Shown here one piece after another: positions 3,789-51,200 of a DNA stretch of 64,000 nucleotides (within the stretch, counting starts at the first letter, position 1; each line of letters starts with the position of its first letter). The notes below the pieces were generated by a model that worked only from the letters and a program-made list of their open reading frames with translations, searched no databases and had not been told where the DNA came from. Source of the stretch: Oculina patagonica (lineage: Eukaryota); contig NC_135759.1 in assembly GCF_052425735.1 (NCBI RefSeq), positions 29,760,001 to 29,824,000 on the forward strand. Reading direction: 5' to 3'. The translations under genes and the position numbers were made by a program.

Positions 3789-3819
<31 letters not shown>

Positions 3820-15800: not shown

Positions 15801-18800
15801 AAGCTGCATCCACGGAATAACTTTTTGCTGTTTTATCCGATAGAGCTCAAACTTTGCACAATGATAGAACTTTTTATTTCAAACAATCATATGATTTTTG
15901 TTTTTTGAATTTAACGGTTTTTGGCGGGAAAATGACGTCACAGTGCCTAAGTCAAATTTTTTTTTCTGTTATGGCACAAAAAGTACATGATTCTGAAAGA
16001 ACTCATTGAGATAAAGTGAAATGCGAAAAAATTATTGAAAAAGCTCAATCCGCCTTGAAGATATAAGGTTTGGAAATTTGAATTTTCCGCCATTTTGTTA
16101 CTATTTTTAGAACATTTACAAAATTCAGATCTTTATATCTTCAAGACGGATTGAGCTTTTTCAATAATTTTTTCGCATTTCACTTTGTCTCAATGAGTTC
16201 TTTCAGAATCATGTACTTTTTGTGCCATAACAGAAAAAAAAATTTGACTTAGGCACTGTGACGTCATTTTCCCGCCAAAAACCGTTAAATTCAAAAAACA
16301 AAAATCATACGATTGTTTGGAATAAAAAGTTCTATCATTGTGCAAAGTTTGAGCTCTATCGGATAAAACAGCAAAAAGTTATTCCGAGGGTGCAGCTTCG
16401 GGCGCTCTCCTGGCCCGGCGTGTTAAGCTCGGCAAGGGGCCCTTTATATAAACAAACAAGAACATTGAGAAGCTTGAAAAGCTTAAAATCGGGCGCTTTG
16501 CCTTGAAAGGCAGGGTTCAGTACAGCAGAAACCACGAAGCAGTTACTTAAGTAGCACTCAGTCCGACTGTGTTTGTGTAAGTCACAGGGCTTGCATGAGC
16601 TGTATTAGTGTGCATAATATAATATCTAGAACGTTGTCGAGATTGCATTATTACTTAATGACATGATGGTTTCAATTTATAAATGTATCTCACACAATAC
16701 AAATAAACGATTGAAGTAGACGACTAGACAATGTAAAGTTTTAAGACTTAGCAAAGTGCAGTGTATTGGTAATACTGTAAGGTGCGGTTTCGCCTGAAGG
16801 TCGTGTGCTTTTCGGTATTTTCCAGGCATTGCACTTTGATGGGACAGTACTACAACTGTTTACCGGGGAACTACTATTGTCAAGAAAATGATCACAACTT
16901 GTTGATGAATGATTGAACATTTGTTTCATACCATTACTGTAATAGCAATTGATAAAGGCTTTTAGTCCTGAACCAAAGTATAAGGACTGGGAAATACTGA
17001 AACCCATTATCAGCCACCTTAAACGGAAATATCTTGTTGGTGTTTCAAGGAATCCAAGGAAACTTCACTCATCCCATGTATCTATGTATTGCGGTATTTT
17101 GTAATTTTTTGAGTGATTTTTGGGGATGTTTGGCAGGTGATAGTTTTTTTAAAAGAATTAGTAAAATTTAGACAACTAAGAAATATTGAAAATTTAATGT
17201 GAATTTAACATTGGAATTTGAAGTTAGAAATTGGCAGACGGACACCAAACAGTCCCGTGACATCCTGGAGTGTTTTTGCATGGGGGTCAACTGTGTGATG
17301 ATGTTTCCATTTTTTTCTTCAATCCCCACTGATAAAGAACTGTTGTTGGTGTTATGTTGGTGTTATCACATGTCAAGCCTTTAACAAGGTATGAAAGAAC
17401 ACAAGGATTTAAATTATTCTGGTGCTCAATTTTTGCGTAACTAAAATTAATGTTACTCAAATTCCTGATGGATTCTGTCTTAAACTGTTACGAGCTTAGT
17501 ATTTCCAAATTATTGCATGTCAATGTAAGGCAAGACAAGACATGCCTTGGTTCTTATGTAATTCACTTAAAAACACAAAAGATATTGACTATAATTTTGT
17601 CTGTGCTATGGCAATTCACAGTGGGGTGGTCTTGATGTATCTTTAACTTGTAGACTGGACTGGACTAGTAAAACGCGGACTAGTAAAACGCGGACTTGTA
17701 AAACGCCTCTAGACACTTCGAATTCCTTGGCCACAATCATCTTACGGCTCTCTTCAATACATAATGTGTCAAAAAAAACAGTAACCTTAGAAAGAAGTCA
17801 GAAGCAAATAAGGTCGAAAGACCGAATTTGAACATATAACGGCAAATGTTCTAATGTCACGAACGTAGGAGTCGTGTAGGCCCGTCACCTTTATTTACCA
17901 CATACTGCCCCCAAATTAAAACAGTACCCTCAGAAAGAAGTCAGAAGCAAATAAGGTCGAAAGACCGAATTTAAACATTTAACGGCAAATATTCTAATGT
18001 CACGAACGTAGGAGTCATGTAGGCCCGTCACCTTTATTTACGATTGACTGTTGATTTCTGGACGGGCCCCGTTCTACCTCGTGCGAGCAATACAAACGAC
18101 TGCACTCAACAGACGTCAAGTAGTGGAAAGAAAGAAACATATGCACACAACTCATAGCATCAATCCCGTTGTTTTAGTAGGGGTTTGCAGAACGAACATG
18201 TGCTATACTGCAAAAACATCTCCACGCTAAAACAGACCATAGAGTGCTCAAAAAAGCTAGAAATATGCCGTCGAAGAAACACACAAGAGCTTCAAACACA
18301 AATTGTTTCGCTCGCTAAACCGTTTAGTTTTATCCGATTTACAAGCGCTTGTTTTACAAGTCCGCGTTCTACAAGTCCGTGCTTAACAAGCCCTCGTTTT
18401 ACAAGTCCGCGTTTTACAAGTCCGCGTTTTACTAGTCCTCGTTTTACAAGTCCGCGTTTTACTAGTCCGCGTTTTACTAGTCCGCCTTTTACAAGTCCGC
18501 GTTTTACCTGAGTCCGCGTTTTACTAGTCCGCGTTTTACAAGTCCGCGTTTTACTAGTCCGCGTTATGGTGGATTTCCACTGACGCGTAATTTTTTACGT
18601 GCGTGAAGAAATTTAGAGACAATGTATGAATGGCTTGCGTAAACGTTCACGCAAGTCGTTCATACGTTGTCTTAAAATTTTTCCCCCACGTAAAAAATTA
18701 CGCGTCAGTGGAAATCCACCATTATACTAGTCCGCGTTTTACAAGTCCGCGTTTTACTAGTCCGCGTTTTACTAGTCCAGTCCAGTCCTCGAAATACAGT

Positions 18801-21800
18801 ATGCCAAAACTCCCCGCCCTCTAAAGATAAGTCCTTGACGGTTCTTGTCGTTTTTCGGTGCCTATTCATCTTCGGCATCTTTCTCATCCACCTCTCGTTC
18901 TGTCCTGTGTCTGTCATCACACGAAAGAAAAGCTGATTCTCAAAAAATCTGCCACAAAAGGAAATTGACAAAAACAATATGAAAACCATATATCGAAAGT
19001 TTCTTATTCTAAAATTTTATCATACGTCTTAATTCAGAGCTACAAAGAAGTTACTCCTTTTGAGTTATTGATACTGTTCTTACAGTACCTCTTTCCACTA
19101 GCGAAATGTTACAAAATTCTTTCGCGGCGAAAAGGTAGCGCGAATCCAGAACAGACTCCAATCGAGAGTGGGTTAATTCTAGATTACTATTAATTAACTA
19201 TTACAACATTCATTTTTAAAATAGTTTCCCAAGCCGACTAAGCTAACTAAACGTCGAGTGTATCTTTCAGTAAACAAAACATGCCGTTATGACGCCGGAA
19301 ATCCAGCTCACGCATACTATACCCCGTGACTCACGCAAACCTCCGACTTACGTGCTACTACAGTCATTCCTTTCTAAACATTTTTTTTTTGACCACCACC
19401 GTACCTTTCTACCCAAAAAACTCATGAAACCGCCCGGTTTTAACCTGTTTTAACCTTTCAAAAATTAGAGCGTTCGAAACTAAATGAGATCCGTAATCAC
19501 AAACAACATACAGCCGTTTACCAGCACTCTTTAAAACTCCTGAAACCCTTCAAAATCAGGCAAAATAAATCTTTGAAATAACCTTTATCAATGTTTCTTA
19601 TTTTTTATTCAGTTCTATAAAATGCCTTTCACACACTACTGTCAAACAAAAATTTCAATTTCCTCAAAGTTTCAAGACAAAAGAATAACAAATATTTCGT
19701 GCACAATGTAATTTGATTAAGCCAATATTATCACGTCTAAAAATACTTCAAGCAATTCAGTGAAAACCCGTTTTTTTTTTCGTATCAACGAAAACCACTT
19801 TCGAATAACCAATACATGAAAATAACAATAAGATCAAAAGGAAGAAAGGAACCTTTCTAATTATTTGAAGACTTTCAAAGCCGTGATATTATGCATCCAA
19901 TCCGCGATAAAATTTAATTACAACAAAATCCAAGTTCTCATTTTGAATTCCATTTTTTTCAGTTGATACCTTTATCCAACTTGTGAAAAATTCCATTCAA
20001 GTTCCTATTAATACTGTACATTCCCAATGTTTTGCTCAGGTCTTCAGAAGCGTCTTACTAACCAAATCTAAAATAATTCCAAAACATGCTGTACAAACAT
20101 TCTACTCTTTGTGACAAACGACTTGACGACCAATTGTTCAGAAATGAAAATCGACACAGTTCTTGCTAAATAAAAAAAAGTTTTACGGCGGAGTCAGGCT
20201 CAAAAAATATACCGCAAGATCACACCCCCATTCATAGTCAGAAACCAGCAAACCATCTAGTTTGCTAAAAAAACACTGCGTGACATCAATGACGTTACCT
20301 TTTTCATTTACAAAAATAACTTTAACTTGTCAAAGTAAGTGCAATTTCACAATGGTGAATATCAGTACAGTATGGGGCCCAGTTCTCGGCCGGGTCCAGT
20401 TCTCGGCCACTTTGTGTTTAACGCGTTTTTTCACACTCCAGTTGAATAAAAAGAAAAAGGTATTTCCTTCAAACGATAGACTGATTCATGTGCTTTAAGT
20501 ATCTTGAGTTTGATCGTTCAATTCGATATAGAAAGCTCACACGTCGAGTTTACGCGGAGGTAGGTGAATTTGCATTCCCGAAAAAGTTGTTTGTTTACGG
20601 CTCCAAATTCATGGATGTAGTTAAATTCGTATTTTATCCAAAAGCCCCCACCATACGAGCTAATTTTTGGCATGTGAAACGTAGAATAATTCAGCTTTCT
20701 GCTTTAGTTAACTTTTCGTTGAACCGTTGTATTTTTTGGTCTTAACTTACTTCGAAATTTTTTCTTGCGACGTTTGCGTATTTGCCAGTTCTCGGCCACC
20801 CTGCTCGCTATCACAGCTTAGCGCTTGGTTTTTAATATAATTTCATCTGCTGCTGCCAGAATGAAAGAAATAAATGTTTTAAAAATAAAGTTCAATCTTA
20901 TCTCTAAGTTTTGAGCTGACTCTTGTCTTGTCTATTATTTCTACAACACCTAAATCTTTCAAGACCTTTTCACTGCAAAATAAACCATCTAAATGCACGG
21001 GTCACACAATGCGGTTTTGCCAGAACCTGCACATAGGCAACTAGGCGCGTTAAAATCCTTCTTTTCTAAAGTAAAACAAAGCATCATAAAAATAATTTGG
21101 GATCGATATAGTATAAATAGGTTTACAGAGTGATTTTATGACTGTGAAAATTAATTGAGCATTTTTTTACAGATAATTACGCACAAGCTTTTTAGTGGCC
21201 GAGAACTGGGCCAAGGTGGCCGAGAACTGGGCCCACAAATGGAGCTTTTATTTTTATTATTGCTCGGGCAAATTAATTTTTGACCGGTCGATAGCTTTAC
21301 ACAAAAAGCTGAATAATGTAGCTAGCTCTGGGAGAAATTTCAAGTTCCTGCGGTTCTTCTGAGGTAAGAAATACAAGTTTACGTCAAAAGTGGCCGAGAA
21401 CTGGGCCAAGGTGGCCGAGAACTGGGCCCACAAATGGAGCTTTTATTTTTATTATTGCTCGGGCAAATTAATTTTTGACCGGTCGATAGCTTTACACCAA
21501 AAAGCTGAATAATGTAGCTAGCTCTGGGAGAAATTTCAAGTTCCTGCGGTTCTTCTGAGGTAAGAAATACAAGTTTACGTCAAAAGGGGCCGAGAACTGG
21601 GCCAAGGTGGCCGAGAACTGGGCCCACAAATGGAGCTTTTATTTTTATTATTGCTCGGGCAAATTAATTTTTGACCGGTCGATAGCTTTACACCAAAAAG
21701 CTGAATAATGTAGCTAGCTCTGGGAGAAATTTCAAGTTCCTGCGGTTCTTCTGAGGTAAGAAATACAAGTTTACGTCAAAAGTGGCCGAGAACTGAGCCC

Positions 21801-33101: not shown

Positions 33102-34037
33102 ATGGCTACTTCACCAAAGGGAAAAGGAGCTTCCGTCGTTAAGGAAGTCGTAGACACGATAAACGGGTTAGGAATATTTGCAGACGATCACAAATTTCTT
33201 TGCCGTGTTGCATGGGTCGAGTCAAAATATGGAGAGGCGCCTGGTACATACAGAAGCGGTTACCATGGAGGTATTTGGCAGGTAAACGCCTCTTTTCTCA
33301 AGTTGTCCCTTCGTACGTAATAGTTCGTAGGTAGTAAGCTTTATTTAAGCCGATACTTCCTTGACGTAAAACTTTATTCTTATTTCTAACATAAAACGAG
33401 ACCTGGAAGGCAAAAGAATTTTTCGCAGGACACCAAGTCTATGTGTATGTGGAATTTTGCATTATTTATTTCTTTGCAGCCTTTCCAACCTTACTCGTTG
33501 TTTACATGCCGTGATTAGATATGCCGAGTGGAAAATAAAGAAATGAGGGTCGGCGAAAGTTGGTTTTGCACAATCAGTCTGTCACTGGTTAATAAAATCC
33601 CGTACGTTGCGCATTCTATGAAGTAATCGAAAGCGAAGATATTTAATTTATATGCCAGAAAATTACTTTACCATAGGATATATCTACCCGGGTCCTCTCC
33701 GGGCTGTCAGTTTATACGACATTTCTTTATTAACGCTTAGGTTGACAAGATTGGTTACCGTGAGACTGTTATACAGCAAGGTCTGAAGAAGTACCGCGAC
33801 CAAATTCAAGCTAAACTCGGCATCGACTGGACCGAGACTGAATGGGAAGACTTGGAGAAACCGCTGTACTCTGGACTAGCTGCTCGGCTGTTTCTTGCAA
33901 GAATTTCCGCTCCTATTCCATCAGATCTTCCTTCTCAAGCTCAGTACTGGAAAACTCACTACAACACTTCAGCTGGTAAAGGAACTGTGCAGAAGTTTAT
34001 TGAGGATGTGAAGAAGGCAACAGGTTGTGCTGCCTAG
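33102..34037 (+). CDS. Lysozyme-fold (GH23/SLT-like) protein, copy A, 158 aa, no signal peptide; exons 33102-33281, 33741-34037
   Basis: MATSPKGKGASVVKEVV...FLCRVAWVESKYG...YHGGIWQ|VDKIGYRE...KPLYSGLAARLFL...YWKTHYNTSAGKGT...GCAA*. The ES, GIWQVD and YN motifs occur in lysozyme-superfamily order; phase-0 GT-AG intron. Confidence 0.85.
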
Positions 34038-34933
34038 ACTAGACAGGATCCGTACTGTAACGTCTTAAAACTATAAATAACACAGCTCGCAATTCAAAAG
34101 GTTTAGTCAGTTGTCATGAAATGCAATTCAAGGTTAAATTACCAGAATTATTCTTTTCCTAAGAGGTCTAGCCTTAACGTAGTCTAAGGTATTTGTTTAA
34201 AGAATAATTGTAAAATGAAACACAAAATGAAATAAACTTTGTATACGCTTGAAGGAAATGCTTTGACGTTTCATTAGTTTCCGGTCACGCCATATTTTAG
34301 AAAGCTGTCGACCTTAATAATGCTATATCTAATCAACAGTCTGATATTGCTATGGCCTTCTTCAAGTATCAAATAAACTTCAGCATACATCCTTACCAGA
34401 AACAGCTTATTGCCAAATATGCTTACAACGCTATCAATATCTAGAATCTTACTATGGAACGTATGATATAAAACCGAAAGACATTTTTAAAAGCTTCGTT
34501 GAAGCAATAAAAATAATCTGACAAAATGTCCAGAATCGAAAGACAATAAGATGCTAGTTCTTGCAGCCATCTTGCGCATGTATGGCCGTTTGTTATCGTT
34601 GGGCACCACTCTAATTCAGTTGAGTTAAGGTTAAATTCTGTTCGTTATAAAGCGTGAATTATATGCGGAAATTGAAATACACAAAAGTTCAGGGGATGTC
34701 TTATTATATTACTTAATGTGTGGTAAGCTGCTTACCTTGAATACTGACGAAAACCGCAGTGCGGTCTGATATATTCGAATATTATTAAACTAATTCAAAC
34801 GAGAAAATCATTTAGTCGGTAAGTCAATTAATAAATCCAACTGAAATTTTATGTTTTTAATACACATGCATGTCACGCAATGCTGTTTTCCTAAATAGTG
34901 TTTGGTCTCATACGTACGGTAACTGAGACGACT

Positions 34934-35292
34934 TTTCGGTTTCAAAACACATCATCCCGTGGAAACTGAAAGTATCTCGGGTCATGCTATAGAAACAAAG
35001 ACACAACAAAACAAAACAAATAAAAAATCAGAGAACTCTTTTGATTGGTTGATTTGGTTGAATGCAAATATCTAAACCGGAGACCTGTCTGCATGATCGG
35101 ACCTATTTTAGCAACACGTCATTCCGAAACTGAAAGATATCACTGGTCCGACTACTCCAAACAAACCAATCACTTTGAGTTCTGAATTAAATCTAAATAT
35201 GGTAAAGATATCGATGTTATCGTAAAACCAGTTCTACCGAAAGAAACAAGTTCATTCCTATTTGAAGAAACTTGCGAGCAGAGGAACCAGAG
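34934..35292 (+). promoter_or_regulatory. Promoter and non-coding first exon of copy B with three IRF/ISRE-type GAAANNGAAA motifs
   Basis: TTTCGGTTTC 34934-34943, GAAACTGAAA 34962-34971 and 35126-35135; CCAAT and TATA-like block 35164-35205; donor GTAAG at 35293. Confidence 0.5.
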
Positions 35293-36584
35293 GTAAGAAG
35301 CATGCATTTAAAATCAATTAAGATCGAATCATGTGGAAACTAGAAGGTTAACCTTTCCTATTTTGTACTTTTTGCCTACAGCCGTCCCGGCGGCTAGTTG
35401 CTCAGTATTTTGGAAACGATTTCTGTATCTAAAACATTTATATACCTTCCGCTTGTTCGCATACTGTCTTCTACTTTTTACCGAGATATGAATATTTCAG
35501 TGCACATCGAAAAGAGTCAGACTATATAAATCTTTATTGTATACGTATGCGAATGACCAGCAAAGAGCGAGCCCACACAATTAGTCCCGAACACTATACA
35601 TGACATGCCAAAGTAGGGCCACCACTTCAAATTTAAAACTTTACTTAGATGGTAGGTTTGAGTCTTTCGGTTTTCCGTACGTTTCACCCAAGTTGATTTT
35701 CACAGATAATAGTAAGGTCACTGATTTGTCCCTATTTCAAAACATCTTCCAAAATGCATAGATTAAATTAGTTCGCACAATTGAAACCGGGCAAGATACA
35801 TGACCTTTACTTCCGTGTTTGAGAAAGCGCGTGGCTTTCATATGGTGATAATATCTATTTTAGCATGGTACGTCACTTTTTTCTTGGTCCAGAAAAATAC
35901 ACGACTTTCTCATTTCGTAATCCTCTTTTGCAACTAACAATCATAAAGTCAAAACGTTTACTCAAGTAGAATTCCTTAGGGGATCGATTCCAACCATCGG
36001 AAACTGAAAATAAAGAAATCCACGAAATGCACAGTAGCTCCTACCGGTTGTTCTACTCGACTGTGAAATTATCTAACAGCGCTCTATTTTTTTCTAAAGA
36101 CGCTTAAACGCCCATCCGATAATTGTTCCTTCGAATCGATCGAAATATGACAAAATTTTTGCTCTCGGAATGAGAAGTTATTAAACGGATGAGCAGGTGC
36201 AGAGAAATAAACTGTCCCTTTAATTTTAATCCTGTGTAAAAGATTTTTGTAATTGTGTTTTAAAAGGTAGGTTTTTGTGACATTCGAGAAAAAAGTGATG
36301 AGGAGGTATCTTTGTTATCGTTGTTCAATAATAACAATTTTCCGCATCTAATTCACTTTCAGAACACTGCCAGTTAAGTTATAAGTTATAATTAAACTGA
36401 GGCAGTGAACGTAAATAAAAATCAAACATAAAGTTGGTCTGAACTAGACTTCCTAAAGTGCACAGTTTTTCCCGCAGAAGCACATTAAAGACAACAACGG
36501 CTGCAGCAGCGACAGCAATAACAACAACAACCGACTAAATAAACAGAACAGTGACAGTATTTTTTTGTCTTTCCCTTTCAGACA

Positions 36585-37647
36585 ATGTTTCTGGCAGCGG
36601 TGTTTGTCGGTCTGGCCGCTCCGTTTTTTCTTGGATTAAGTATGGCTCGTGCTAGTCCATACACACCAGGAGATAAAGGAAACGCGGTAGTTACGGAGGC
36701 CGTGAACATTATCAATGGCTTGGGAATATTTCCAAATGATCACAAGTTCCTCTGCCGTGTGGCCTGGGTTGAGTCAAAATACGGACAGGCATCAGGTACC
36801 TACAGGCCGGGTTATCATGGTGGAATTTGGCAGGTGAAGATTCTTAGATTGAATTATTATATTCATGATTCCTGTTTCATTTGTTGGGTAAAAAGGGGGT
36901 TAATGAAGATGCTTTGTCGAAAGAAGGTGCTTATTTTGGGAAAACTCACATGTTTTTTCGAGACTGCCATGTCTTATCTTATTTTATCTTATCTTATCTT
37001 ATCTTATCTTATCTTATCTTATCTTATCTTATCTTATCTTATCTTATCTTATCTTTTCATATCATGTCATGCCTTGTCATGTCGTGTAATGTCATGTCAT
37101 GTTATGTCACGTCACGTCACGTCACGTCATGTCATTTCATTTCATGTCATGTCATGTCATGTCATGTTATACTATGTTTTTGTAATCTAACTACGTATAT
37201 CACCATCATTTTATTTATTTGCCACTTCAGAATTACAATTACAATTGAAATTAAGTAAAAGTGGGGGAGGAAAAAAAATTGGGGGGGCCCGATAATTTTT
37301 TTGGTTACGGGTTAGTGCTGTTAGTTTACACTATCTTTAAACACTTATAGGTTGACTACATTGGCTATCGCGAGACAGTCATCCAGCAAGGTCTGAGAAA
37401 ATACTGGTTAAGAATCAAGGAGATACTTGGCATTGACTGGACCCAAACTGAATGGGAAGACTTGGAGAAACCGCTGTACTCTGGACTGGCTGCCCGGCTG
37501 TTTCTTGCCAGGCTTTCTGCTCCCATTCCATCAGATCTTCCTTCACAAGCTTGGTACTGGAAGACCTACTACAACACTGCAGCTGGAAAAGGAACTGTGC
37601 AGAAGTTTATTGAAGATGTGGAACAGGCAACAGGCTGCGCTGCCTAG
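36585..37647 (+). CDS. Lysozyme-fold protein, copy B, 181 aa, predicted secreted; exons 36585-36833, 37351-37647
   Basis: Hydrophobic leader MFLAAVFVGLAAPFFLGLSMARA; same motifs and intron position as copy A. Confidence 0.88.
36972..37168. repeat. Compound pentanucleotide microsatellite (TCTTA)n-(TGTCA/CGTCA)n in the copy B intron
   Basis: Visible directly; it produces the spurious LILSY/CHVMS tails in the ORF track. Confidence 0.95.
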
Positions 37648-39847
37648 AAGAGAAGGCTTATATAGCTAGGTACACCTAGCTACTAACCAGTAAATATTGG
37701 TCGATGTTTTTATCCATTAATAGGTAAATTTTTTGGGTGTTTTTTTTTTTTTTTTTTTATTAATAGGTAACTTTCATATTAATTAATTCGCTAACTGTAA
37801 CCAAGTGGATCGGCTAGATGAGTATGCTAATGAGTATTTTTTCATTTAGATTAACCTATGTTGTTTTGTTTCCTTGATTATTCAATCAAGATTGTTCATT
37901 CGACAAATCAAACTAAAATTTATTTTCCTACTTTTTTACCCTTTAATAAATAATAAAAAAGAAAAAATATGGTAGTTTATGTTCTGTCAGTAGTTAATAA
38001 GACTTCATTCAAAGGCACTGTTTCAATCATGTTACTCAGTTCTCCTCTTTTAATGGGACTCAAAAAAGTTTTATAAAGGGAGGCTACGCTCCGAGTTACC
38101 CTTTCACTTTTGTACAGTAGAAAGAATGCAACACTTTTTGAAAGTTTGCACTTGAAGAACGCCTTAATAGACTATCGATCAGCGATAAGGTGCGTCTATT
38201 CGAATATTTTAAAAGGCCTTTCCAAATACCGAAATGACACTTTTCATTGTCCCTATATAAACCCCAGCTCGTGAAATCCCTACCCTTTTATATACTTCCT
38301 GCCTGAAAAAGAAACCCGTTTCAGTCAGAATCTTCCATACGGTAGGGTTAGGGACTCCCACCCCTCTCTCGGGGACCTCCTAAAGTCCTTTAACCCCCCT
38401 CCCCCTCCGCATGTGCGAATATTCTCCATTTAGGGAGTGTTCATTATTTATTGTTGGGGGGGGGGGGAATTTTTATGGCTCCGCCTTCGATATCTTTATC
38501 TTTATCCCTCGGACAACACAGACTTGACGAACAGACTTGACCCCCCTCCTCAAGGGGGACCTTACAACTTCCACCCCCCCCCCTCAAATATTTTATAAAC
38601 AATGCAGTATTAACGGAGGTATTAACATTTAGAAGAAAACAAATTTAACAATCATTGAGCATGCGTTTGATATGAGATGCCAGATAGCCAATGAGGCGCC
38701 AAGCGCCAAGTTGGCAATAACTTTCTCATATCCAACAAGCGCAAGTGGAAAAGTTGTTTTATCGAAGACACCCAATGATTTGCAATATTTGTGCTCCCCG
38801 GTTGTTCTCACTGACGCATACACCTACCATATGTGTGGCCAATGGTATGTGAGCTCATATACCATGACCTGTAAACCAATACAAACTCAGGGATTGCGAC
38901 ATAACCTGGCTAGTTAGATATAGAAAAGACCTCGTTAAGAGTTTGACTTTCTCACCAAGTGACATAAACAGATTATGTACCCTTATTATCAACTTAATGA
39001 TAAAAAATTGGAACTGTGAAAAAATTAACTCTGGCAACACACTTGGTTTGTCACTGATCTTAAAAAAAATGCTTGGCCCATTCAGTACTGGTAGACATCG
39101 ACTGGTTTATTTATTTATTTAACTTGTTCCCTTAGTCACACATGTATACATTTGTATCAGGCTAGTTAGTTTGTTTGCTAGTTCACTTCATCAAATTAAA
39201 ACAAAGGAAATCATAACCGTGAAGGAAGTTTGGAAACCCGGCCTTAATTAGAATAGATTTTAAAGATTTTATTTCTCCGTTTACTCCGTAGTTTTTGTTT
39301 CGATTGAAAAGATATATCAAACACTCGAGACAGGCCATCCAAACACCTAGACGTCAAAAATACTCCGCTGCGCGTCGCATTTTCAACTCTTTCTCGGTGT
39401 TTGGATTGATGAAACACTGCTCCGTGTTTGATAGACAGTTACTTCCAAATTACTCGACTAACGCTTGCTTGAACCACCAAGGAAAGAGAAGCCCCCACCC
39501 CAAGACATAAATAATGAACACCCCCTTTAAGTGTACAGCATATTGTAAATGTCATGACGGCGTACGTTTTGATATGAATCTGGGTTATGGAATGAAAATG
39601 CTAAGATTTTTTTGGTTTGCCCGAAAGAAAAATGTCCAATATAAGCGGAATCTTAAATACCAAATACCCAGCCGGTATATCTGAACGGAAAATGAATGTG
39701 CTTACCGTATACGCGTATTTACCCAATACTGGAAAACACTAGTTCTTCTTCAAAACACATTAATTTGTCGTCTATATATTCTGAAAAAGTACACAATGAA
39801 CATACGAAGAGTATTTTTCATTCTCTATGTACTGAAACTATCAGCAG

Positions 39848-40174
39848 GTCGAATTATCGTGAAAATGTCATTCAACAATGTTTGAAGAAATACCGCGACC
39901 AAATTCAAGCTAAACTCGGCATCAACTCCCGGGCATCATGAACTGTACCGCGACTGAATGGGAAGACTTGGAGAAACCGCGGTACTCTGGACTTGCTGCT
40001 CGACTGTTTCTTGCCAGAATTTCTGCTCCTGTTACCTTAGATCTTCCTTCTCAATCTCAGTATTGGAAAACTCACTACAACACTTCAGCTGTGAACGGGA
40101 TTGTGCAGAAGTTTGTTGATGATGTGACGAGCGCAACAGGTTGTGCGGCCAGTCGCCTGAAAACTATTAATTAA
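39848..40174 (+). pseudogene. Lysozyme-fold copy C: last exon only, frameshifted duplicate of copy A
   Basis: KKYRDQIQAKLG and KTHYNTSA are A-type; a 17-nt insertion after GGCATC shifts the frame (TGA at 39939-39941); GKGT is changed to VNGI; the normal stop is lost; no ES-motif exon found upstream. Confidence 0.85.
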
Positions 40175-40315
40175 CTTCAGCATATAAATAGTGGCCACAA
40201 TCTTATTGCCAAATATGTTTACAACGCTGTCAATATCTATCATCTTACGGTAGAAGTGTATTAAAAGCCGAAAGAAATTTAAACTTAGCGAAACCATATA
40301 GTTGCAAAAAAAAAA

Positions 40316-40591
40316 ACACTTGTCAGGTTTGCATTTGAAGGACACTTGTAAGTCTAATTTAGGTACTGCGTTAAGGTCATTTCTTTGTTTGTATAAGCCT
40401 GGATTTTATGCGGCAATTAAAAGACGCAAATGTTGGGATGTCTTATATTATTTACACTTGTCAGGTTTGCATTTGAAGGACACTTGTAAGTCTAATTTAG
40501 GTACTGCGTTAAGGTCATTTCTTTGTTTGTATAAGCCTGGATTTTATGCGGCAATTAAAAGACGCAAATGTTGGGATGTCTTATATTATTT
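40316..40591. repeat. Perfect 138-bp tandem duplication
   Basis: 40316-40453 equals 40454-40591; the paralogous region near 34550-34715 is single-copy. Confidence 0.9.
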
Positions 40592-41012
40592 GCTCTGCGG
40601 TACGCTGCCACCTCGAATACAGACGTAAGCCGCCGTCCGTTCTGATATACTCGATATTGTACTAATTCATTCGTGATAATCGGTCAACCTGTAAGGTTTT
40701 GGTATTTATTGCATTAATTTAATTAAATTATGTCCTTAATAACATGCATATTACTAGTGATAGTGAACGTCAATGCTGTTTTCTTAAATTGTGTTTGGTC
40801 TCAAACGGTAACCGAGATGACTTTTCGGCTCCAAGACAAATCATCCCGATTTGTTCTGAAAGTATCTCGAGACATGCTATAGAAACAAAACATAACACAA
40901 CAAAACAAATAAAAAAAATCCTAAATGTTGATATTGAAACGAAACCTATCTGACCCGTTTCAGCAACGCATCACCCCGGCACTGAAAAATATCACTGATC
41001 GCCACTCCAGAC

Positions 41013-41147
41013 TAACCAATCACTTTGAGATCTCAATTAATCTAAATATGGTAAGGTTGTTGTTTTAAAACCAGTTCTACCGAAAGAAACGAGTTCATTC
41101 CCTTTATGAGCTGTTATTGAAGAAACTTGATAGCAGAGGAATTAGAG
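41013..41147 (+). promoter_or_regulatory. Core promoter and non-coding first exon of copy D
   Basis: AACCAATCACTTTGAG...TCTAAATATGGTAA...CCAGTTCTACCGAAAGAAAC...AGAG|GTAAGAAGCAT aligns with copy B 35164-35303. Confidence 0.55.
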
Positions 41148-42586
41148 GTAAGAAGCATACATTTAAAAGTCGCTTGAAATCGAAATTAAAGTTAATTCAG
41201 TTTAATTATCGAGCGTGCAGTTCAAGCAGCAATACTTAATGACATGTTTTTAATACCACACTTGGTGGTTCGTTTTCGAGGAAATTGATTGAGGCTTATA
41301 ACAAGGAATTGTAACTGAATTATTTTATTTTATTTTATTTTCCTTTGCAGACTAAATTAAGTTATATTAAAAAAATAAATAGGAATTTGCAGTTATCCAC
41401 AGAGTGGTTCTGCATCCACCGTTTCCAAATTGAATCAAGATGTGGAATCTTGTACTGTGGAAACGATTTCTATTAGTAGGAACGTTTGAGGTGCATTTTC
41501 GCATCAATTACTGTCTTTTATTCTTACCAAGATATGCACATCTCAGCTAGTGCACAAGAAAAAATGTCAGGCTGTAGAAATCTGTTGTAAACTAAAGTGA
41601 CCAGTAAAGAACCAAATAAGCCTCCCGAACACTAAACAGTGCATGCGAAACTAGGGCCACCACTACCTACTAACTTTCATTTTAATTTCAACAAATCATT
41701 GAACAACTTTACTCAGATGGCAGGTTTGAGTCTTTCAGCTTTCAGAACGATTCATCTAAAGGTTCAAGTTGATTTTCACGGATAATTGCAAAGTTACTCT
41801 TTTACTTCCTTGTTTGAGAAAGTACATGACTTTCATGTGATGATAATATTGGTTGTAGCATGGCATGTCGCTTTTTTCTTGGTGCAGAAAAAAAATGCAC
41901 GTCTTTCACATTTCGTATCAGGCCTCCTTTTCGATTATCAATTCTTCAATTCTTTAAGGGATCGTTCTCAGCCATCGGAAACTAAAAGAAAGAAAAACAA
42001 TCAACAACTATTCACCAAAGTAGAGGTGGTTAGTGGTTCGCGGCGAGGTGAATATCCACCACTAGCCACCGACACTGAGGTGAATAGTTGTTTTAGTATA
42101 TACTAAAACAGTGAGATAATATAGCCCAAAAGAATGATTTTTTTTACCAATTTATTTCTGCAACGATATACAATTTTCTTGTGCGCGTTGCTCGGAGGTG
42201 AATAGCAAACTAAAGGATATTCGGAGTTTGAGTAGCCAATCGGCGCGCGCCAAAAACGCTATCCACTGTTTTGTATATACTAATGTACACTAGCTCCTAC
42301 CCACTTAAATGTGAAATTATCTAAAAGCGCCCTATTCTTTTCTTTTAACTTACTTAAAAGTGAACCTATTCTAAACGCTGATTCGATAATTGATCTTTCG
42401 AATCAGTAATGGAAAATGTTTGCTCTCGTGAATAATCTCTATACAGAGTGGGAAATTATTAAACGAAGTAGCGGGTTGTCCACCGGCAGCGACATCAACA
42501 ACAAAAACAACAACAAAAACAACAACAACAACAACTAAAACTACAATAAACTGACGGGATCTTTTTGTCTTTCTCTCTTTCAGACC

Positions 42587-43604
42587 ATGTTTCAAAAAAC
42601 AGTGGTGTTCGTTGGCCTTTTCACTCACCTTTTTCTAGGATTAAGTATGGCTTGTACTGATCCATACACACCAAGAGGCAAAGGGAACGCCGTAGTTACC
42701 GAGGTCGTGAAAAGGATTAACAGTTTGGGAATATTTCCAAACGATCGCAAGTTCCTCTGCCGTGTGGCCTGGGTCGAGTCGAGATACGGAGAGCATCGTA
42801 ATACCTACAGGCGTGGTTACCATGGTGGAATTTGGCAGGTAAAGATATCACAGTTTAAGTCTTATTCCGTGTTCTAGGATTGTTGCTTTTCTTTGTCTTG
42901 TCTTGTCTGGGCGGGACTGGCACGTTTTACTGCGTATTTTAAAGGGAATATGTCGTGGCTAAATGTTTGCAAAGAAATTAATTATGTGATTCTAAATGAC
43001 AAAACCATAGCTTTATTTCAGCCAAATTTGTCTCCCGGGAGTATAATTTAATGTAACCGGCAGACAAGATAAACTTTGGAAACTGTTCCGCCGCACCATA
43101 TTTCAAAAACCCATATCATAATCCGTCTCAATCTTCGACACTTTTGGTCATCCGTAACTTCTTTTGCCATTTGGTGTGTTATTTAAATATTCCTTCACTG
43201 CTTTAAGCGGGTTATTTTATATATTTAAAAGAATTTGATGGTCATTTCCTATGCTTAAGTTTGGCTCAAATCCTTGACACGGTCCCTTTAAATGTTTATA
43301 GGTTGACTACGTTGGTTATCGCGAGACTGTTATTCAGCAACGCCTGAGAAGGTTCTGGAACAGAATCAAGGAGAGACTCGGCATCGACTGGACCAAGACT
43401 AGATGGCAAGACTTGGAGAAACCGCTGTACTCTGGACTGGCTGCCCGTCTGTATCTTGTCAGGATTCGTGCTCCTATACCGTCCGATCGCGATCTTCCTT
43501 CGCAAGCTCGGTACTGGAAGACTTACTACAACACTGCAGCTGGGAAAGGAACTGTGCAGAAGTTTATTAAAGATGTGAAGCGCGCAACAGGTTGTGCTGC
43601 CTAG
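42587..43604 (+). CDS. Lysozyme-fold protein, copy D, 184 aa, predicted secreted, strongly cationic; exons 42587-42838, 43302-43604
   Basis: Leader MFQKTVVFVGLFTHLFLGLSMA; VAWVESRYG, GGIWQ|VD and YWKTYYNTAAGKGT intact; many substitutions to Arg. Confidence 0.88.
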
Positions 43605-45253
43605 AGAAAAAGGCAGTGGTCTGTATATCTAGCTACTAAACAGTAAACATAAGTCGCACTAAAAAGTACTTCTTAAAAGTAACTTTTATAGATTAACTAA
43701 CTAAAAATAAGAGGATGGGCTAGATGAGTGTACTAAATGAATATTTTTCATTGAAGGATTAACCTAAGTTTTCTGAGATTGTAAGATTCGTCAAATCAAA
43801 TAAAAAGTGTTTTCCATCTTTTTCTTTTAATAATAATAAGAAGAAAAGAAAAACAATAAAAACAGGCGAGTTTATCTTCCGTTTGTAGCTGGTTATACGA
43901 CTCCGTTCTCCTCCTGGGAGGGGAAAGGGGAAGGGGAATTCAACAGAGGCTCCGCCCCGAGCTCTAAGCACTTACCTTTTATATACCATTTTGGACAGAA
44001 AAGTAACCTTTCGTACAACTTCCAAATAAAATAGTACCCCTTTCACTTACTTACAGTAGAAATACTGCAACACTTTTCTAAAGTTTGCACTTGAACCCCC
44101 TCTTTAAATGTTTACTTTCATCAATCATTAGGTGCGTCTTTTCGAGATATTTTGAAAGGCCTTTCTAAATACCTAAATGACACTTTCCCCTATCCTTTTT
44201 TATACTCAAACTCGTGAAATTCCTACCCTTTTATATACCACCAGCCTCCACCCCAAGTCTTATATGGAGTTTCCGTTTGGGGCTTACGAGTACCATTTGT
44301 CCATACCGTGAACGTTCAGTGAAACAACCACTGAACTACAATAAGACTCGTGCCTTTCATGGGAACTTTTATTCACTGCCATTTCACAACAACTATTAGT
44401 TAGCTTTTGCAATCACCACGTTCTTTAGCCTACTGTTCCTTATTCTTGGGAGCGTTCTTTTGTTGCATGCAGGCACTCAATTAACAAACAAGTCACATTA
44501 CCACACAAATTGAACAATTTATTTTGCCTAGTCGCTAAACATCACGTTGTAATACATGTTCACGATCTGGATTAGCTCCTTAGTGTATTCTATCCCTTGG
44601 TGGTGTTTTCACATCATTTTCACCCTTAATTTCGTGGTGAATTTTATGACCCTGCCTTTCTAAATAATTTTCACCAGCAATGACGTTATTGCTTGTTATT
44701 TTTTAGTCGCTGACAGTGAGGTAAACTTTGCAGGTCAGTTAAACGAAATAACAAACCACACAGCACAGTACGTAGGAGCCTTTTAACTCATAACCATATT
44801 GCTTGCATTGACTTGCAAAATGCAAAATATTTCTTTTTATCATGTTCGTTATACTACTTAATCGAGACATTTTTTCACGCAATCTTTAAATAAGTTTTTT
44901 TTTAAGTTAGAAAAAAAAATGTACTCCATACTTTTCAGTATGGTAGTAGTTGTTAGGCATCAGAAATTTTATTCCTTCTGCTATAGTGTTACTTGTTAAA
45001 AGAATCTCCCCCAAGATCCCTCTGCTTTCCGCTCATCTAGCTTTGCCTATTATCTGGGTATGCCGATATTCGCTCGGACACAAAAATTGCATTCTCGAAT
45101 CCACTAAAAAGTAATCTTTCAATTTCAGTAAGGGAAGGGCATAGATGGTTTTTGTGAACGCGAATAACAACAGTATTATTTTCAGAAAACGCATAGATGG
45201 CAGACAAGCAGCGCTTGAGTGCACAATGATGACTGTGGTTGAGGCAAACTCTT

Positions 45254-48200
45254 TTATGCTTCAGTGTATCTTCCGCTCATTGTCATTATGAGATCCTCCA
45301 TTATGCAGAATCCCTGCAAGACAACATGAAGAAAAATCATTAAAAAGCAAATAACAACAACAAAAAACATACAGAAAAGATGTTTTATTACAACATTATG
45401 TACCTAAGCAGCATTTTGCCAAGTTAAACAATTCAAGGTATAGAAAAGTTACATGTACGCTTTGAGTCTCGTTCATTTCAAGAGAAAAACTAACAGTTTT
45501 ACCATCATTCTATGTATGGCTTTGTGAGTTGGAGTACTAAATATTTAGAACATAATTATAAAAACAACTGAGATGACCAACACCTGTTGGTGTTTTATCA
45601 ACTACAATAATCAGAAAAGAAAAATTAACAAAAATAACATAAAGGGAAAAGTATATAATTTTGTTATTGATGCCATATGAATAATAACAGTTGTATGATA
45701 CTCAACATTTTTTTTTAAGTACTCAATTTAAGCTGTGTAAGTCTTGGATAGCTCAGCTTGGGTGGTTTTGTGGGCAAGTGATTGGGTGCATGAAAGTGCG
45801 ATGATTTTTGTCATTTCTTTTCTCTACTATATCGAATGGAGTGGGGGGGGGGGGGGAAGGGGATGTGGGGTAGTAAGGCAATGTTACCTTGTTAGCTCCA
45901 CGTTGAAGAAATGTCTGTCCAAAAGCTTCCATCATTCCACCAATTAAAGAACCAACACCATTTACACTGATACTACCGCGCTGCTCAAACGACGTCCTAG
46001 AGTTGACAAAACACTACATTAAAGGTCAAATGAACAGAAATTTCGATTTTTTTTATTTTTTGCCCATGTGTTTATTCAGAGCCAAATAAACATATCCCGA
46101 AGTTTCAAAGTAATTGGACATTGCATCGCAGAGATATTGCAAGTTTAAAAATGCTTTTTTAGGCCTTCATAATCGTAGAGCGCTCGGAAAAATTGTCGGA
46201 AAATTGTCGGAAATAAAAACTTGTGACGTCATAATTGGTGTTTTTGAAGACGACCGCAGACCGATTCCGCGGACCGCACGTTAGAATTTAAATAAATGTG
46301 TTTAGTAACATTTTAAGCAGTTATTTCGTTCTGTTCGGCCGTTTTTCATTCGGTTGATTGTTGGTTGTTGTTTAGAGACGCGCATTTTTTTAAATAAAAA
46401 AGCTAAAGCTCAAAAATAGCTTAAAGTTTTGTTTGCTGTCGTTTTGCATATCATGTGAGACATAGGTAGAATGCACGCTGGTTTGAAAATAAATCAGGAA
46501 TCTTTATTGTTCTTCACATTAGCATTTTACGTTAATGAGCAGAATTATCTGCACGTGCGTTTTGAATCTTGGTACACTTCAAAGCCGTTCTCTGTCGAAC
46601 AACAGTGTGAAATGACGAAATTCTGGGAATTCTGGACAACGTCAGGCACGACGGCTAATATTTGTTTTTTTCTATTTGGGGTTAAACGCTCTCTTTGAAT
46701 ATTCAGCGGCAGCTAGTTCTTAAAGCAATAAATAAGCAGAAGACGTCCGGAAAGTTGCGAGATTCTCAAGTAAAATATAAATTCATTTTCCACGTTGTAG
46801 TCCATCAGCTAGTGGGGTTGTATGGCTCACTTAAGGGGAACAAACGAAACTTGTCTAATATTACTCTTTGACTATTAAGCATCATAAAAATGTGTGATAG
46901 CAAGGATAAAACGGTAGCTTTCACTGTGTAAATCGAATTTGAAATTTACTCTCATATCCTTCTTTTGGCCGCCATCTTGGATTTTTAAACAAAAATCCTT
47001 AATTTTTTTTATTCGTTCTTAAATACTTACTGATTTTTGCTTAGATATATATTTGAGAAGTACTTCATATTCGGAACATTATTTTAGCATTGTTTACGGT
47101 AATAAAAGCAAAGTACGCAATAAATGAGGTCGCAATGTCCGCCATTTTGTTTTTCAGCTCGTTTTCCTTTTGCTCCTCAATCATCTAAAATAACAAAATT
47201 ACCATAAAGGCGTGCCATCGTAATGCTACGTTTTTTCAAGTATACTACACCATTAATCAGTATACCCCAAATCAGATTACATAGCTACGTCCACGCATAA
47301 GGTTAGAATAGGGCTCAGTTAAGAGATTGTTGAGTACAGAACAGACAGAATCGCCACACTCGTATAAAGTCCTCCTTCACTGCTGCTATGCTTCTGTCAA
47401 CTCTTCTGGAGCGGTGAAGGAATTACCGGAAGGGAATCAGTAGCTCTTCTCTAGATTGTGGCTTGAAAATTTCCTCTTGTAACATTGAGTTCGGTTAGTG
47501 GAGATGCCTCGCGTGGTGGGAGAACCTCTGGCTTTACTTTCCCGGGCGCCGTTCACTTTTCTCTGGCTTCACTTTCCCTGGCGCCGTGAATCTCATAGCA
47601 CAGCACATCCACACTCTGACACGTCTTCTCGTACAGCTGATACACTTATGCTTTCGTATCTTTAATGATCACCTCGGATACTGCAACTCCTCCCCGCTAA
47701 TCGCCATAGCTCGGACGTACGTTTCGTACGTTGGCAAAGCTCCACTTTTCTGGTCTTCGCACCTCTTCCCTCTTTTTTAAAGTACTTTGCATGTCCGTGG
47801 GACGATATGTTTGAAATAAAGGGCTGGGCTGGAAAATGACGATTGCTTTTTAGGGGGATTTATTTAAGACACTTGAATGGCAATGGTATTTTATCTACAT
47901 GAAGTTGTTGTTTTTGAAACACTAGAATGAACGAAATCATGTTGTTAGTTCCAATAAGTTTAAATTTGCGTTTGAAAGCGATTTGCTTACGTTAAAAGAA
48001 TGCAGGCAGCTTTGTAGCTTTTTCACCCCAAAAATCCAAGATGGCGGCCAAATTAAGAAGCGTATAGGGGAGCCAATTTAAAATTCGATTTATAAGTGAA
48101 AGCTACTGTTCCAACCTTGCTATCATACATTTTTGTGATGCTCAATAGGCAAGGATTAAGATAAGACATGTTTCGTTTGTTCCCCGAAAGTGAGCCATGA

Positions 48201-51200
48201 ACCCAAATTTTCGGATCTCAGCTGATGGACTATTGTCGTTGACGTTGAGCTCGTATCTGTGAAATCGGTCTGCGGTCGTCTTCAAAAACACTAATTATGA
48301 CGTCAAAAAAACTCGTTCCATTCCTTCCATTTCAGTGCGCAGTCATTCAAAAACGTTGTCGTGAAGCCTACGGAAATCTTCGTATTTTTTGCTGTTATTC
48401 ACGCTTTAAGGCTCGCAAAGCAAAAAATTTTCTTAATTTTACTCAATAATGGATAGTTTTAGCGTTTGGTTGGTTAAAATGGCATTTTGAAATTTTTTGT
48501 TCATTTGACCTTTAAAACTTAGACTCAATAATACGGCTAACTTGACAATAATATTCTACAAACTTGTAGGAACTTGAAGTTTGTATCAGCCAGTATCTTA
48601 GTCAACAATTGGGTGCAACCAAGTTGACTGCTTCTTGAAGAAAACAAGAGTGAGAATTTTGAAAATGTTTTATTTGATTCATGAGCAAATTTAAATCAAT
48701 CAGTGTAATAATCAGTATGGAATAATCAATGATGGCCCTGTACGCAGAAAGGGTTTTAGTAATGTTTTAGTTGATCATTTTTGGATTATGACTGTTAACA
48801 CACCAGTTTGGATTGTTATCACACGCTCTGTAAGTGCTGAACTCTTCCAGGGAAGCGTACTTGGACCATGTCAGGTTGTAACAATGAAGACGAAGACATC
48901 TCTCTTTCCTGTTAAGCCATGCTTCCTCTTCCACCACAATTGCTGGGAATGGGCACAGCTAAAAACAAAACTTACGTTAGAAGAAGATCATTCCATTTTG
49001 AAATTTGACAAAAAACTTTGCACAAGAACAACAACACTCCAGTCATAGAATTTAAACCTAAGAAAAATATATGGTATATGTACTTTTGTTCATATGATCC
49101 TTAAATCACTTTTACCCACTCCCTTTCTCTTAAATAAAGTGCTTTTATGATGAAATTTGTATCTTCTCTTTCGTAGCCATACTAGAATATTAACAAGTAC
49201 ACTATATAAGAAAAAAATGCCATGCAGATTACTGTTCTCTACTGAATATCTCTTTTCTTTCCAGAGATATTCAAGTTTTTAAAATATGCAAATTAGCAAA
49301 GTAATGATGTCATATACTCAACTTTATTCATAGTAATTCAAAATGTTTATAATGTAGCTTAATGTAAAACTACTTTGTAGTATGTACAAACTGCTCTTTA
49401 GCTGACTGTGAGTGTCATAAGTTTTTCTTCAGCTGATATCTTAAATCAGGTGGCTGATTAATTAAGCAAGTCATTAACAATAACCAACTGATTCTTACAT
49501 TAAATGCAACACAGTTGGCATTAAGCCTTAATGCCAGTACAAATTTATTTGCTTACCTTTTTAAACAAACCTGGTAAAACATTCACACATTCTCCTCTTC
49601 TCAAGAGATACTCCTCTCCAGTTTCTGGGTCTTACAAAAAAGGGAGAATGGTCTGAGTAAAACCCAAAGGCTAAGTCCTTAGTTTGCAATCCAGTGATAT
49701 AGTTATGTAGTAGGTCAACCTCTATAAGTGCCCCACAGATTGGCAGTAGTTTGATGGTAAATGGATAGAGTTTATAAATTATTAGACGCTATAAATTTAG
49801 GGAGGTGCAGTAGCTTAACGGTTAGTATCACACTCTAGATTAAGCAGTTCCATGTTCAAGACCCAGCTGGGGTCAATGTGTCGTGTTCTAACCTAGACAC
49901 TTAACTCTAATACTGCCTCTCTCCACTCAGGTATACCGTATTTTCTCGATTAAACGCCGGGCCCCGAATAAACGCCGGGTCTCCAAGCTGTATTTGAAAA
50001 TAAACCCCTTAGACATTTATTCAAGGTTTAATATGCTTTGGAAATAATGTCTACATGTGTGGCTGTCAAAAATAATGAATAAAAATCATTTCTTAGAAAC
50101 ATAGGGCTTGAATAAACTGCTGGAATCAAATAAACGCTGGCTCTATCAGGCCAAGTTTGAAATAAACGCTGGGGGCGTTTAATCGAGAAAATACGGTATT
50201 AATAGGTACCATAGACCCAATGCAAATATGGCCACCATTAATTCTTGGCCCCCAAAAGAAACATTTGCTAACACAACTAAATTACTTTACCTTAAAAATG
50301 AAGTCAAAGTAAATCAGTGTGTGATGTTTTAAAGATATATTCGTATCTTATGGGAAGTTTCAGGGACATATATTTATCAAAACCAAAAATAAATTCGGGG
50401 TGGCTTTTTTTATACTGCCAATCTCTTAAAATTTAAATATATCACAAATTTGCACGGCTCCTTTAAACCAAAAATGCTGAAATCTCTCAGAGTAGGACAT
50501 TATTCTATCTATTTTTAGTTGTCAACATCAGCATCTTTAGAAACTTAATCAGCCAAGCAACAGAAGGCAATGCCCACCCAGCAGGAGTAGAATTACTCCT
50601 GGTCAATTTATGCTATGGCGATTGGATACAAGCACTGGCCTGTTGGGCCACTAGGTTGAAATACTGAAGAAAAGAGCTGTTTGTTCAGCTTGGGAGATAA
50701 AGGTGGTAGCCATGGGATCATATTATCAATGGTTAGTAAGGTCGCCAATTAAACTTGAATTTGAATATTACTAATCTGTTACACTGAAACTCATGATGCA
50801 TCCCAATTATACAAATTTGAGGAATAATAACTGGGTTATAATATTCATTCTGTAGACAGATTAGCAGAACACACTGTACCTGTTCTGTGTTCCAGTACTG
50901 TTATGGAGGTCACATTGGTATCTTTACCACAGGTGTACTGTTAGTTCCATTGTACAAGTATAATAATGAGATAAAAAAACATTAAGTATGAAAAAGAAAA
51001 CATTACATGTACCATAAGTGCTATGCGTGAGTCACATGTCAAGCTGTTTGTAGAAAAGCCTCATTTTTTCTAAGCATGATGAACCAAATATGAGGTAATG
51101 TTTCATAACAACATGGAGAAGATGACTTTTGATGGCACAGTCCAAAGGAAACACTGATATGGCGATGAAATGGTAAAGAGCCATGGTTGGGAAAATGGAA

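Follow-up and report, generated by a model that had tools for sequence, protein, structure and literature searches.

The stomach c-type lysozymes of ruminants and colobines are one case in which paralogues have diverged into defensive and digestive forms, and the i-type lysozymes of the oyster are another. In the oyster, the defensive cv-lysozyme 1 has an isoelectric point (pI) of 8.95, 19 arginines, a high ionic-strength optimum and the strongest killing, whereas the digestive cv-lysozymes 2 and 3 have a pI of 6.3-6.8 and 5 arginines (PMC3020801); the Mytilus g-type lysozymes MGgLYZ1/2 present a similar case (PMC3448621). Here, we describe a divergence of comparable kind in the stony coral Oculina patagonica, in a window of 64,000 nucleotides (contig NC_135759.1, positions 29,760,001 to 29,824,000; positions given below count from the first letter of that stretch), which holds a tandem cluster of four copies, A to D, of a gene belonging to an uncharacterised protein family. 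Copy D encodes a strongly cationic protein while the product of its sister copy B is nearly neutral, and the counts of direction and rate of change on the D branch, though not formal codon tests, support a one-way build-up of positive charge on an intact paralogue with a conserved core.

The mature region of D contains 11 Lys and 21 Arg against 8 Asp and 6 Glu (32 versus 14), which corresponds to a net charge of +18, a pI of 10.23 and a charge of +16.6 at pH 8.1. The mature region of B contains 9 Lys and 8 Arg against 7 Asp and 9 Glu (17 versus 16; net +1, pI 7.9), and that of A contains 21 basic versus 18 acidic residues (net +3, pI 8.8). A preliminary description of this DNA had counted 16/16 basic and acidic residues in B, 21/18 in A and 32/14 in D, which is right to within one residue, namely the Lys or Arg of B that adjoins the predicted cut of the signal peptide. 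The four peptides it had quoted are all found in D (QRLRRFWNRIKERL at residues 97-110, HRNTYRRG at 70-77, VRIRAP at 137-142 and IKDVKRA at 173-179); the gain in charge is spread over the molecule, as it had reported, and the catalytic motifs, which it had called unchanged, are so: the positions conserved in the family, among them E64-S65, G80-G-I-W-Q-V-D86 and Y160-N161...G165, are intact in D.

Like the oyster i-type pair, in which duplicated lysozyme-type genes diverged in pI and Arg content with their catalytic residues kept, D and B differ in both properties (pI 10.2 versus 7.9; 21 versus 8 Arg) and have an identical conserved core. By this analogy, the D/B pattern resembles the known divergence of defensive and digestive lysozymes. 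It differs from the oyster pair in that D and B belong to another, uncharacterised protein family known here from sequence, in that the charge gap is larger (about 18), and in that the cationic copy looks the derived extreme here, whereas the acidic digestive form is the derived one in the oyster. Compared with the known cases, three things are new: the family concerned, the width of the charge gap and the conservation of a three-gene array.

The charge of D is extreme but not unique, because it is the second highest in a range that runs from -14 to +20 among the 106 domains taken from the best 150 representatives of the family, several other domains of that set lying at +17 to +20. Among anthozoans, the A-type proteins, which have no signal peptide, mostly carry +1 to +4, and the secreted paralogues of corals and anemones (Orbicella, Montipora and sea anemones) mostly carry +7 to +15, the exceptions being B (+1) and one transcript-derived sequence (-2). 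Secreted members are thus usually strongly cationic; D marks the extreme among them, and the near-neutral B is the one that departs from the rule.

The sites at which B and D differ were polarised one by one, using five other sequences as outgroups. Sixteen replacements were assigned to the D branch, eight of them raising the charge and none lowering it (net +10; sign test, p=0.006), and nine to the B branch, with one increase and five decreases (net -4); 10 sites were ambiguous (net +4, D minus B). The divergence of D from B is thus real, but B is no static reference for it: at least 10 charges were gained by D and at least 4 lost by B, with about 4 left ambiguous. Random nonsynonymous mutation, computed from the majority-codon list of six relatives, would raise the charge in 18.8% of cases (0.188) and lower it in 16.7% (0.167). 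Arginine is the endpoint of 8 of the 16 replacements in D, including three from Lys to Arg. At sites invariant in the six other sequences, the private changes of D number 13 nonsynonymous and 3 synonymous, versus 28 and 40 for the six relatives pooled (Fisher test, p=0.005). All the replacements in D lie at positions that vary in the family, the mean column entropy being 2.67 bits at the D-changed sites versus 1.47 elsewhere (p=4e-6); the 55 best-conserved positions (below 1 bit) are all unchanged, and D carries every invariant or nearly invariant residue of the family.

The formal codon tests do not add significant support to these counts. We used our own implementation of the GY94/F3x4 codon models on seven sequences, 158 complete codons and a maximum-likelihood tree, a setting in which the tests have low power and in which gene conversion violates their assumptions. 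In the branch model, the ratio of nonsynonymous to synonymous rates (dN/dS, omega) was 0.55 on D versus 0.25 elsewhere (likelihood ratio test, LRT, against a single ratio, p=0.064) and 0.26 on B, the value for D not being distinguishable from 1 (2dlnL=1.97). Branch-site model A on the D lineage, a test which the preliminary description had proposed, assigned 10% of the sites (p2=0.10) to a class with omega2=4.0 (LRT 2.38, p ~0.06-0.12), a suggestive but not significant outcome, and the same model A found no site class with omega>1 on B. An omega above 1 together with a significant LRT, the codon-model mark of positive selection, was thus not obtained for D, for which the codon evidence of positive selection is suggestive. 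The directional selection that had been put forward for D is accordingly favoured by the one-way charge changes (8/0), the nonsynonymous excess and the lack of an AT-to-GC bias (see below), but not by significant codon models.

The array is conserved in Orbicella faveolata, where Orb1 (no signal peptide, core charge +3), Orb2 (secreted, +7) and Orb3 (secreted, +12) are followed by a PRELI gene; over the same core, the array of O. patagonica comprises A (+3), B (0), the remnant C and D (+19), followed by a PRELI homologue. In both corals, the most cationic gene is the third, PRELI-proximal one. D and Orb3 have seven states in common (R71, R98, R109, Q120, V137, R140 and R154), five of which are written with the same codon, and the private changes of Orb3 include two charge gains (K97 and R158) and no losses. 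The shared states may be either retained ancestry that resisted gene conversion or parallel changes. Their presence in a syntenic gene implies that the charge of D is not wholly a recent, private event; the charge gap described earlier holds, but its attribution to D alone does not, since Orb3 (+12) has seven states of the cationic signature.

In nucleotide trees, the paralogues group by species, B and D being joined with a bootstrap of 94-98%, and 23 quartet-informative sites favour B + D versus 4 and 6 for the alternatives, so that B had correctly been called the sister of D at this level. Whole-gene positional orthology (D + Orb3, B + Orb2) was rejected, with a log-likelihood (lnL) of -1902.8 versus -1875.6 for B and D as sisters. 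The synonymous distances between the Orbicella paralogues (MZGG01000865.1, 2500-10689) are mosaic, being 0.08 for Orb2-Orb3 in exon 1 and 0.14 for Orb1-Orb2 in exon 2, with most other pairs at 0.4-0.6. This mosaic points to recent gene conversion among neighbouring genes, across the signal-less and secreted types as well.

The family is large: searching with a profile of exon 2 retrieves 1478 cluster representatives at E<=1e-3. Named members come from scleractinians (Orbicella, Montipora, Acropora, Porites and Desmophyllum), sea anemones, echinoderms, Lingula, Owenia and the amoebae Willaertia and Naegleria, and many are from metagenomes; where a database name is given, it is always "uncharacterized", as for the product of D itself ("uncharacterized protein LOC144644015 [Oculina patagonica]"). 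Residues 36-179 of D match phrog_3108, a phage family with no assigned function, at E=2.1e-21, which places D in that family. No Pfam match was obtained, even at E<=10, for the exon pieces, D, B, A or ten homologues; the NCBIfam search gave no match, and the PDB sequences held nothing relevant for D or for the 124-sequence family profile. The Pfam SLT family (PF01464) is touched by one of the 124 alignment members, at E=0.005, below the cut-off, so that neither a significant PF01464 match nor a match to a solved GH23 protein assigns the family to SLT/GH23 by sequence.

Modelled by AlphaFold2 from the alignment of 124 sequences, D is confidently predicted to comprise eight helices (pLDDT 93.7, pTM 0.85). 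Foldseek searches of PDB returned non-significant matches led by phiKZ gp144, MltE, Slt70, MltF and GH19/GH23 chitinases (E 0.3-2, TM 0.38-0.43), and the viral library BFVD returned true homologues first (E down to 4e-10, TM 0.76), followed by LT_GEWL, SLT, destabilase and endolysin entries. Using hhalign, the family profile was aligned to four E. coli SLT domains (Slt70, MltE, MltC and MltD) over 34 columns (P=0.005, probability 7%), in a register that places E64-S65 on the catalytic ES and GGIWQ on GLMQ, MltD itself having GIWQ. Aligned with MltE alone, the profile fell in the same register, and with Slt70 alone the match lay elsewhere, neither being significant. The putative likeness to the SLT/GH23 group (Slt70, MltC, MltD, MltE and goose-type lysozyme) would thus comprise a predicted all-alpha lysozyme-like fold of about 160 residues and a Glu-Ser at a helix end, followed 15-20 residues on by G-(L/I)-(M/W)-Q, which is GIWQ in both MltD and the present family. 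The family differs from the group in giving no significant match by sequence, profile library or fold (123 of the 124 members escape Pfam SLT) and in having a longer spacer between ES and GxxQ, with the loop ES-K-Y-G-x-D-P-x-T-Y-R.

In phages, a position in a lysis cassette beside holin and spanin genes is normally that of the endolysin. In Salmonella phage PMBT28, the phrog_3108 homologue lies directly 5' of a holin gene (phrog_785, E=7e-27) and an Rz-like spanin gene, and none of the remaining genes of this phage carries an endolysin annotation. For Klebsiella phage phiKO2, the counterpart is Gp54, one of a series (Gp53-Gp54-Gp55-Gp56) that follows the late promoter, and the phage list of a spanin survey includes phiKO2 among those with a two-component spanin (PMC6139136). 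These phage proteins (phiKO2 Gp54 and the 165-residue protein of PMBT28) are whole-domain homologues of 150-165 amino acids; they differ from D in being about 30% identical to it and in presumably being endolysins, which act from within the cell. We regard the phrog_3108 family as a candidate for an unrecognised class of endolysins; no description of it was found in the literature on the lysis genes of phiKO2 and PMBT28 or on coral lysozymes. From the fold model, the profile register and the phage neighbourhoods, we propose that the family forms a distant and so far undescribed branch of the lysozyme-like superfamily and probably cleaves peptidoglycan. The lysozyme identity presupposed in the preliminary description is thus retained as a weak fold and profile likeness to lytic transglycosylases, backed by phage lysis neighbours, but finds no sequence match in Pfam, NCBIfam or PDB.

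The A-type protein and its orthologues (corals, echinoderms and Lingula) begin at the mature domain, with no signal peptide; this apparently older metazoan form would thus seem to stay in the cytosol or to leave the cell by an unconventional route. Large representatives of 500-1600 amino acids carry the domain too, in one to three copies each and often at the C-terminus. Some of these large relatives are fused to von Willebrand A (VWA) domains, several of their C-terminal domains are Lys-rich (+17 to +20), and Pfam and PHROG scans of them added VWA domains only. The annotated amoeba homologues are those of the free-living Willaertia magna and Naegleria lovaniensis, and the patchy spread of the family over amoebae, phages and marine invertebrates suggests horizontal transfer.

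The segment QRLRRFWNRIKERL, which had been suggested to be an amphipathic antimicrobial helix, forms helix 4 of the D model. Cationic antimicrobial helices occur in T4 lysozyme, in hen lysozyme (residues 98-112) and in endolysin-derived peptides. The helix of D is like them in being amphipathic, Arg-rich and embedded in a (here predicted) muralytic fold, and differs from them in being only slightly more cationic than its equivalents in neutral paralogues, and in being known here from sequence and model. With a hydrophobic moment (muH) of 0.78, versus 0.59 in B and 0.35 in A, it is the most amphipathic segment of D; its charge is +5, as in Orb3, compared with +3 for the A and B equivalents, at a very low mean hydrophobicity (-0.79). 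It holds 2 of the approximately 18 extra charges of D over B, versus 5 in the C-terminal helix and 3 in loop 111-118, the remainder being spread. Its hydrophobic face consists of L99, F102, W103, I106 and L110, and since L99 and I106 belong to the family-conserved core, the helix is probably packed in the fold. A cryptic antimicrobial helix in D is possible but would not be the main feature.

From these results, we propose that D is an intact, polycationic and, judging from its predicted signal peptide, secreted member of a tandem cluster made of A, B, the remnant C and D, the family of which would most likely be a remote relative of the SLT/GH23 lytic transglycosylases and goose-type lysozyme, i.e. 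peptidoglycan-cleaving. After the duplication of a unit of about 4 kb, Arg and Lys would have built up in D at variable positions only, presumably on the surface, with the conserved core kept, and B would have drifted slightly towards negative charge. D would have specialised as an extracellular antibacterial effector, its positive surface concentrating it on anionic bacterial envelopes, and B and the signal-less A would serve other compartments or conditions. We consider this specialisation of D as an envelope-binding antibacterial effector to be the most likely mechanism, with a probability of about 0.5, the muralytic activity and the antibacterial benefit being what we infer from the family likeness and the charge. 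Several points weigh against it. The codon models fall short of significance, and an omega of 0.55 on D fits partial relaxation equally with selection. The data set is small, with seven sequences and 158 complete codons, and gene conversion has made it mosaic, so that the branch assignments are approximate. The link to lysozymes is weak, in that no Pfam, NCBIfam or PDB sequence matches, the best Foldseek match in PDB has E=0.3 and a TM of about 0.4, and a single member of 124 touches Pfam SLT (E=0.005). Lastly, D and B entered the protein collection from the genome record only, and no expression data were found for D.

A redundant D might instead have gathered replacements at unconstrained surface sites under relaxed constraint or neutral drift, its charge being a by-product. 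Such a history would agree with an omega that differs significantly neither from the background (p=0.064) nor from 1 (2dlnL=1.97), with the non-significant branch-site test, with the location of all the changes of D at freely varying family positions, and with a charge that seems loosely constrained overall, since the family domains span -14 to +20. It would not, however, account for a charge direction as unbalanced as eight increases and no decrease, where about equal numbers are expected (0.188/0.167), and it fits poorly with the intact open reading frame, splice sites and conserved positions of D and with a syntenic Orbicella gene that is cationic too and has seven states in common with D. 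The charge direction of the substitutions is not what neutral drift should give, although omega on D is still compatible with relaxation; overall, we judge drift to be quite unlikely. A mutational bias, either GC-biased gene conversion or A-to-G pressure, might also have made Arg codons with no help from selection, many Arg gains (three from K to R, along with H54R and Q154R) stemming from A-to-G changes in the second position of the codon, in a cluster where gene conversion is active. The GC content at third codon positions is nevertheless similar in D (0.50) and B (0.47), and the changes unique to the D lineage are balanced (7 AT-to-GC versus 5 GC-to-AT, with one synonymous change each way). 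GC-biased conversion was rejected on these grounds as the cause of the Arg gains, and a mutational origin of the charge appears highly improbable.

The charge might have been selected for a target other than the bacterial envelope, such as sulfated mucus glycans, acidic skeletal-matrix proteins, nucleic acids or the walls of algal symbionts, or for a shift in pH or ionic optimum, D perhaps being no muramidase at all. Every database name in the family is indeed "uncharacterized", some relatives are fused to VWA adhesion domains, and the ancestral metazoan form (A type, echinoderms and Lingula) has no signal peptide, which would be odd for a classical secreted lysozyme. Yet the phage homologues sit in lysis cassettes, fold and profile comparisons point to no neighbours other than glycosidases of peptidoglycan or chitin, and D retains the conserved Glu-Ser that aligns with the catalytic position; we view such a target as unlikely. 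It is less plausible still that helix 97-110 acts on membranes as a cryptic antimicrobial peptide, independently of catalysis. This idea draws on a confidently predicted helix with the highest muH in D and a net charge of +5, and on lytic peptides described within endolysins, such as RAP-29, reported from the phiKo endolysin (PMC10836841). Against it, A and B already have +3 and Orb3 +5 in the corresponding helix, the helix of D accounts for 2 of about 18 extra charges at a hydrophobicity of -0.79, and its hydrophobic face includes the family-conserved L99 and I106; we hold the idea to be improbable as an explanation of D.

Turning to the locus itself, a tblastn scan of the window detected the four copies, all on the + strand (Table 1). 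D and B each comprise two coding exons with GT-AG splicing, and their products, of 184 and 181 amino acids, are identical to NCBI LOC144644015 and LOC144644012 of O. patagonica, respectively, our own gene models agreeing with those of RefSeq. In D, an acceptor-like ctttcag precedes the ATG of exon 1, which ends in CAG/gtaaag. The signal-peptide layout of D is also present in B, and is missing in A and its orthologues. The interior of the D intron gave no alignment with the B intron. The units that hold B and D, 66-83% identical in blastn, are colinear over a stretch that begins about 2.1 kb 5' of the ATG and ends about 650 bp after the stop codon. Pseudogenisation of D was rejected, its open reading frame, splice sites and conserved residues all being intact; no exon 1 was detected by tblastn for copy C. 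A short tandem repeat within the B intron (~36900-37150) was seen as an open-reading-frame artefact with LILSY repeats, and an (AAC)n-like microsatellite lies at 42500-42540, about 50 nucleotides 5' of the start codon of D.

Table 1. Features of the copy D gene, the tandem cluster and its surroundings in the window, with the related phage genes in the coordinates of their own loci.
Feature	Position	Strand	Basis or remark
Copy D coding exon 1, codons 1-84	42587..42838	+	Signal peptide, helices 1-2, E64-S65, GGIWQ
D predicted signal peptide M1-A22, MFQKTVVFVGLFTHLFLGLSMA	42587..42652	+	Predicted from sequence: K4, hydrophobic core, then S-M-A
D E64-S65, candidate catalytic Glu-Ser	42776..42781	+	Nearly invariant in 124 family members; hhalign register
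D G80-G-I-W-Q84 (V85-D86 follow at 43302-43307)	42824..42838	+	Nearly invariant; putative counterpart of SLT GLMQ
D intron, 463 nucleotides, GT...AG	42839..43301	+	Splice-site reading
Copy D coding exon 2, codons 85-184 and TAG stop	43302..43604	+	Preceded by ttatag
D helix 4, residues 97-110, QRLRRFWNRIKERL	43338..43379	+	AlphaFold2 helix, pLDDT ~98; net +5
D Y160-N161-T-A-A-G-K-G167, possible counterpart of SLT AYNxG	43527..43550	+	Y160, N161, G165 and G167 nearly invariant; correspondence to AYNAG by eye only, outside the hhalign match
Copy B, predicted secreted, near neutral	36585..37647 (exons 36585-36833 and 37351-37647)	+	Identical to LOC144644012
Copy A, without signal peptide, net +3	33102..34037 (exons 33102-33281 and 33741-34037)	+	Coral orthologues start alike
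Copy C, A-like remnant (KKYRDQIQAKLGI), exon 2 only, frameshifted	39854..40150	+	tblastn
Tandem-duplicated unit of ~4 kb with D	40202..44247	+	Colinear with 34406-38304 (holds B), blastn
PRELI-domain gene (PF04707), 3' neighbour of the cluster	45201..50942	-	Matches Orbicella faveolata MZGG01000865.1 locus 17341-20679
phrog_3108 genes, annotated hypothetical, beside holin/spanin genes	PMBT28 locus 5004-6454; phiKO2 locus 2597-4019		

A broader and more tentative reading, which we consider possible but rather doubtful, is that an undescribed lysozyme-like family, absent from Pfam, NCBIfam and PDB, occurs in the lysis cassettes of phages as well as in bacteria, amoebae and marine invertebrates, and that robust corals have kept it as a conserved three-gene array forming a charge gradient (signal-less at about +3, secreted near-neutral and secreted polycationic). 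Selection would hold the arginines of the polycationic member against homogenising conversion, and D and Orb3 would be salt-tolerant antibacterial effectors of the coral surface.

The bacteria of the coral surface and gut are managed by innate chemical defences, on which corals depend, and, to our knowledge, few coral antibacterial proteins are known. Oculina patagonica is a classic model of bacterial bleaching. Cnidaria apparently have no bona fide lysozymes, according to a review as it is cited in bioRxiv 10.1101/2024.10.06.616844. Should the family described here prove not to be muralytic, the locus would be an ordinary case of surface divergence between paralogues. If it is muralytic, it would provide a new enzyme family for both cnidarian immunity and phage endolysins, and the A/B/D series would constitute a natural experiment on the way in which an enzyme of this type is tuned by its surface charge at the ionic strength of seawater.

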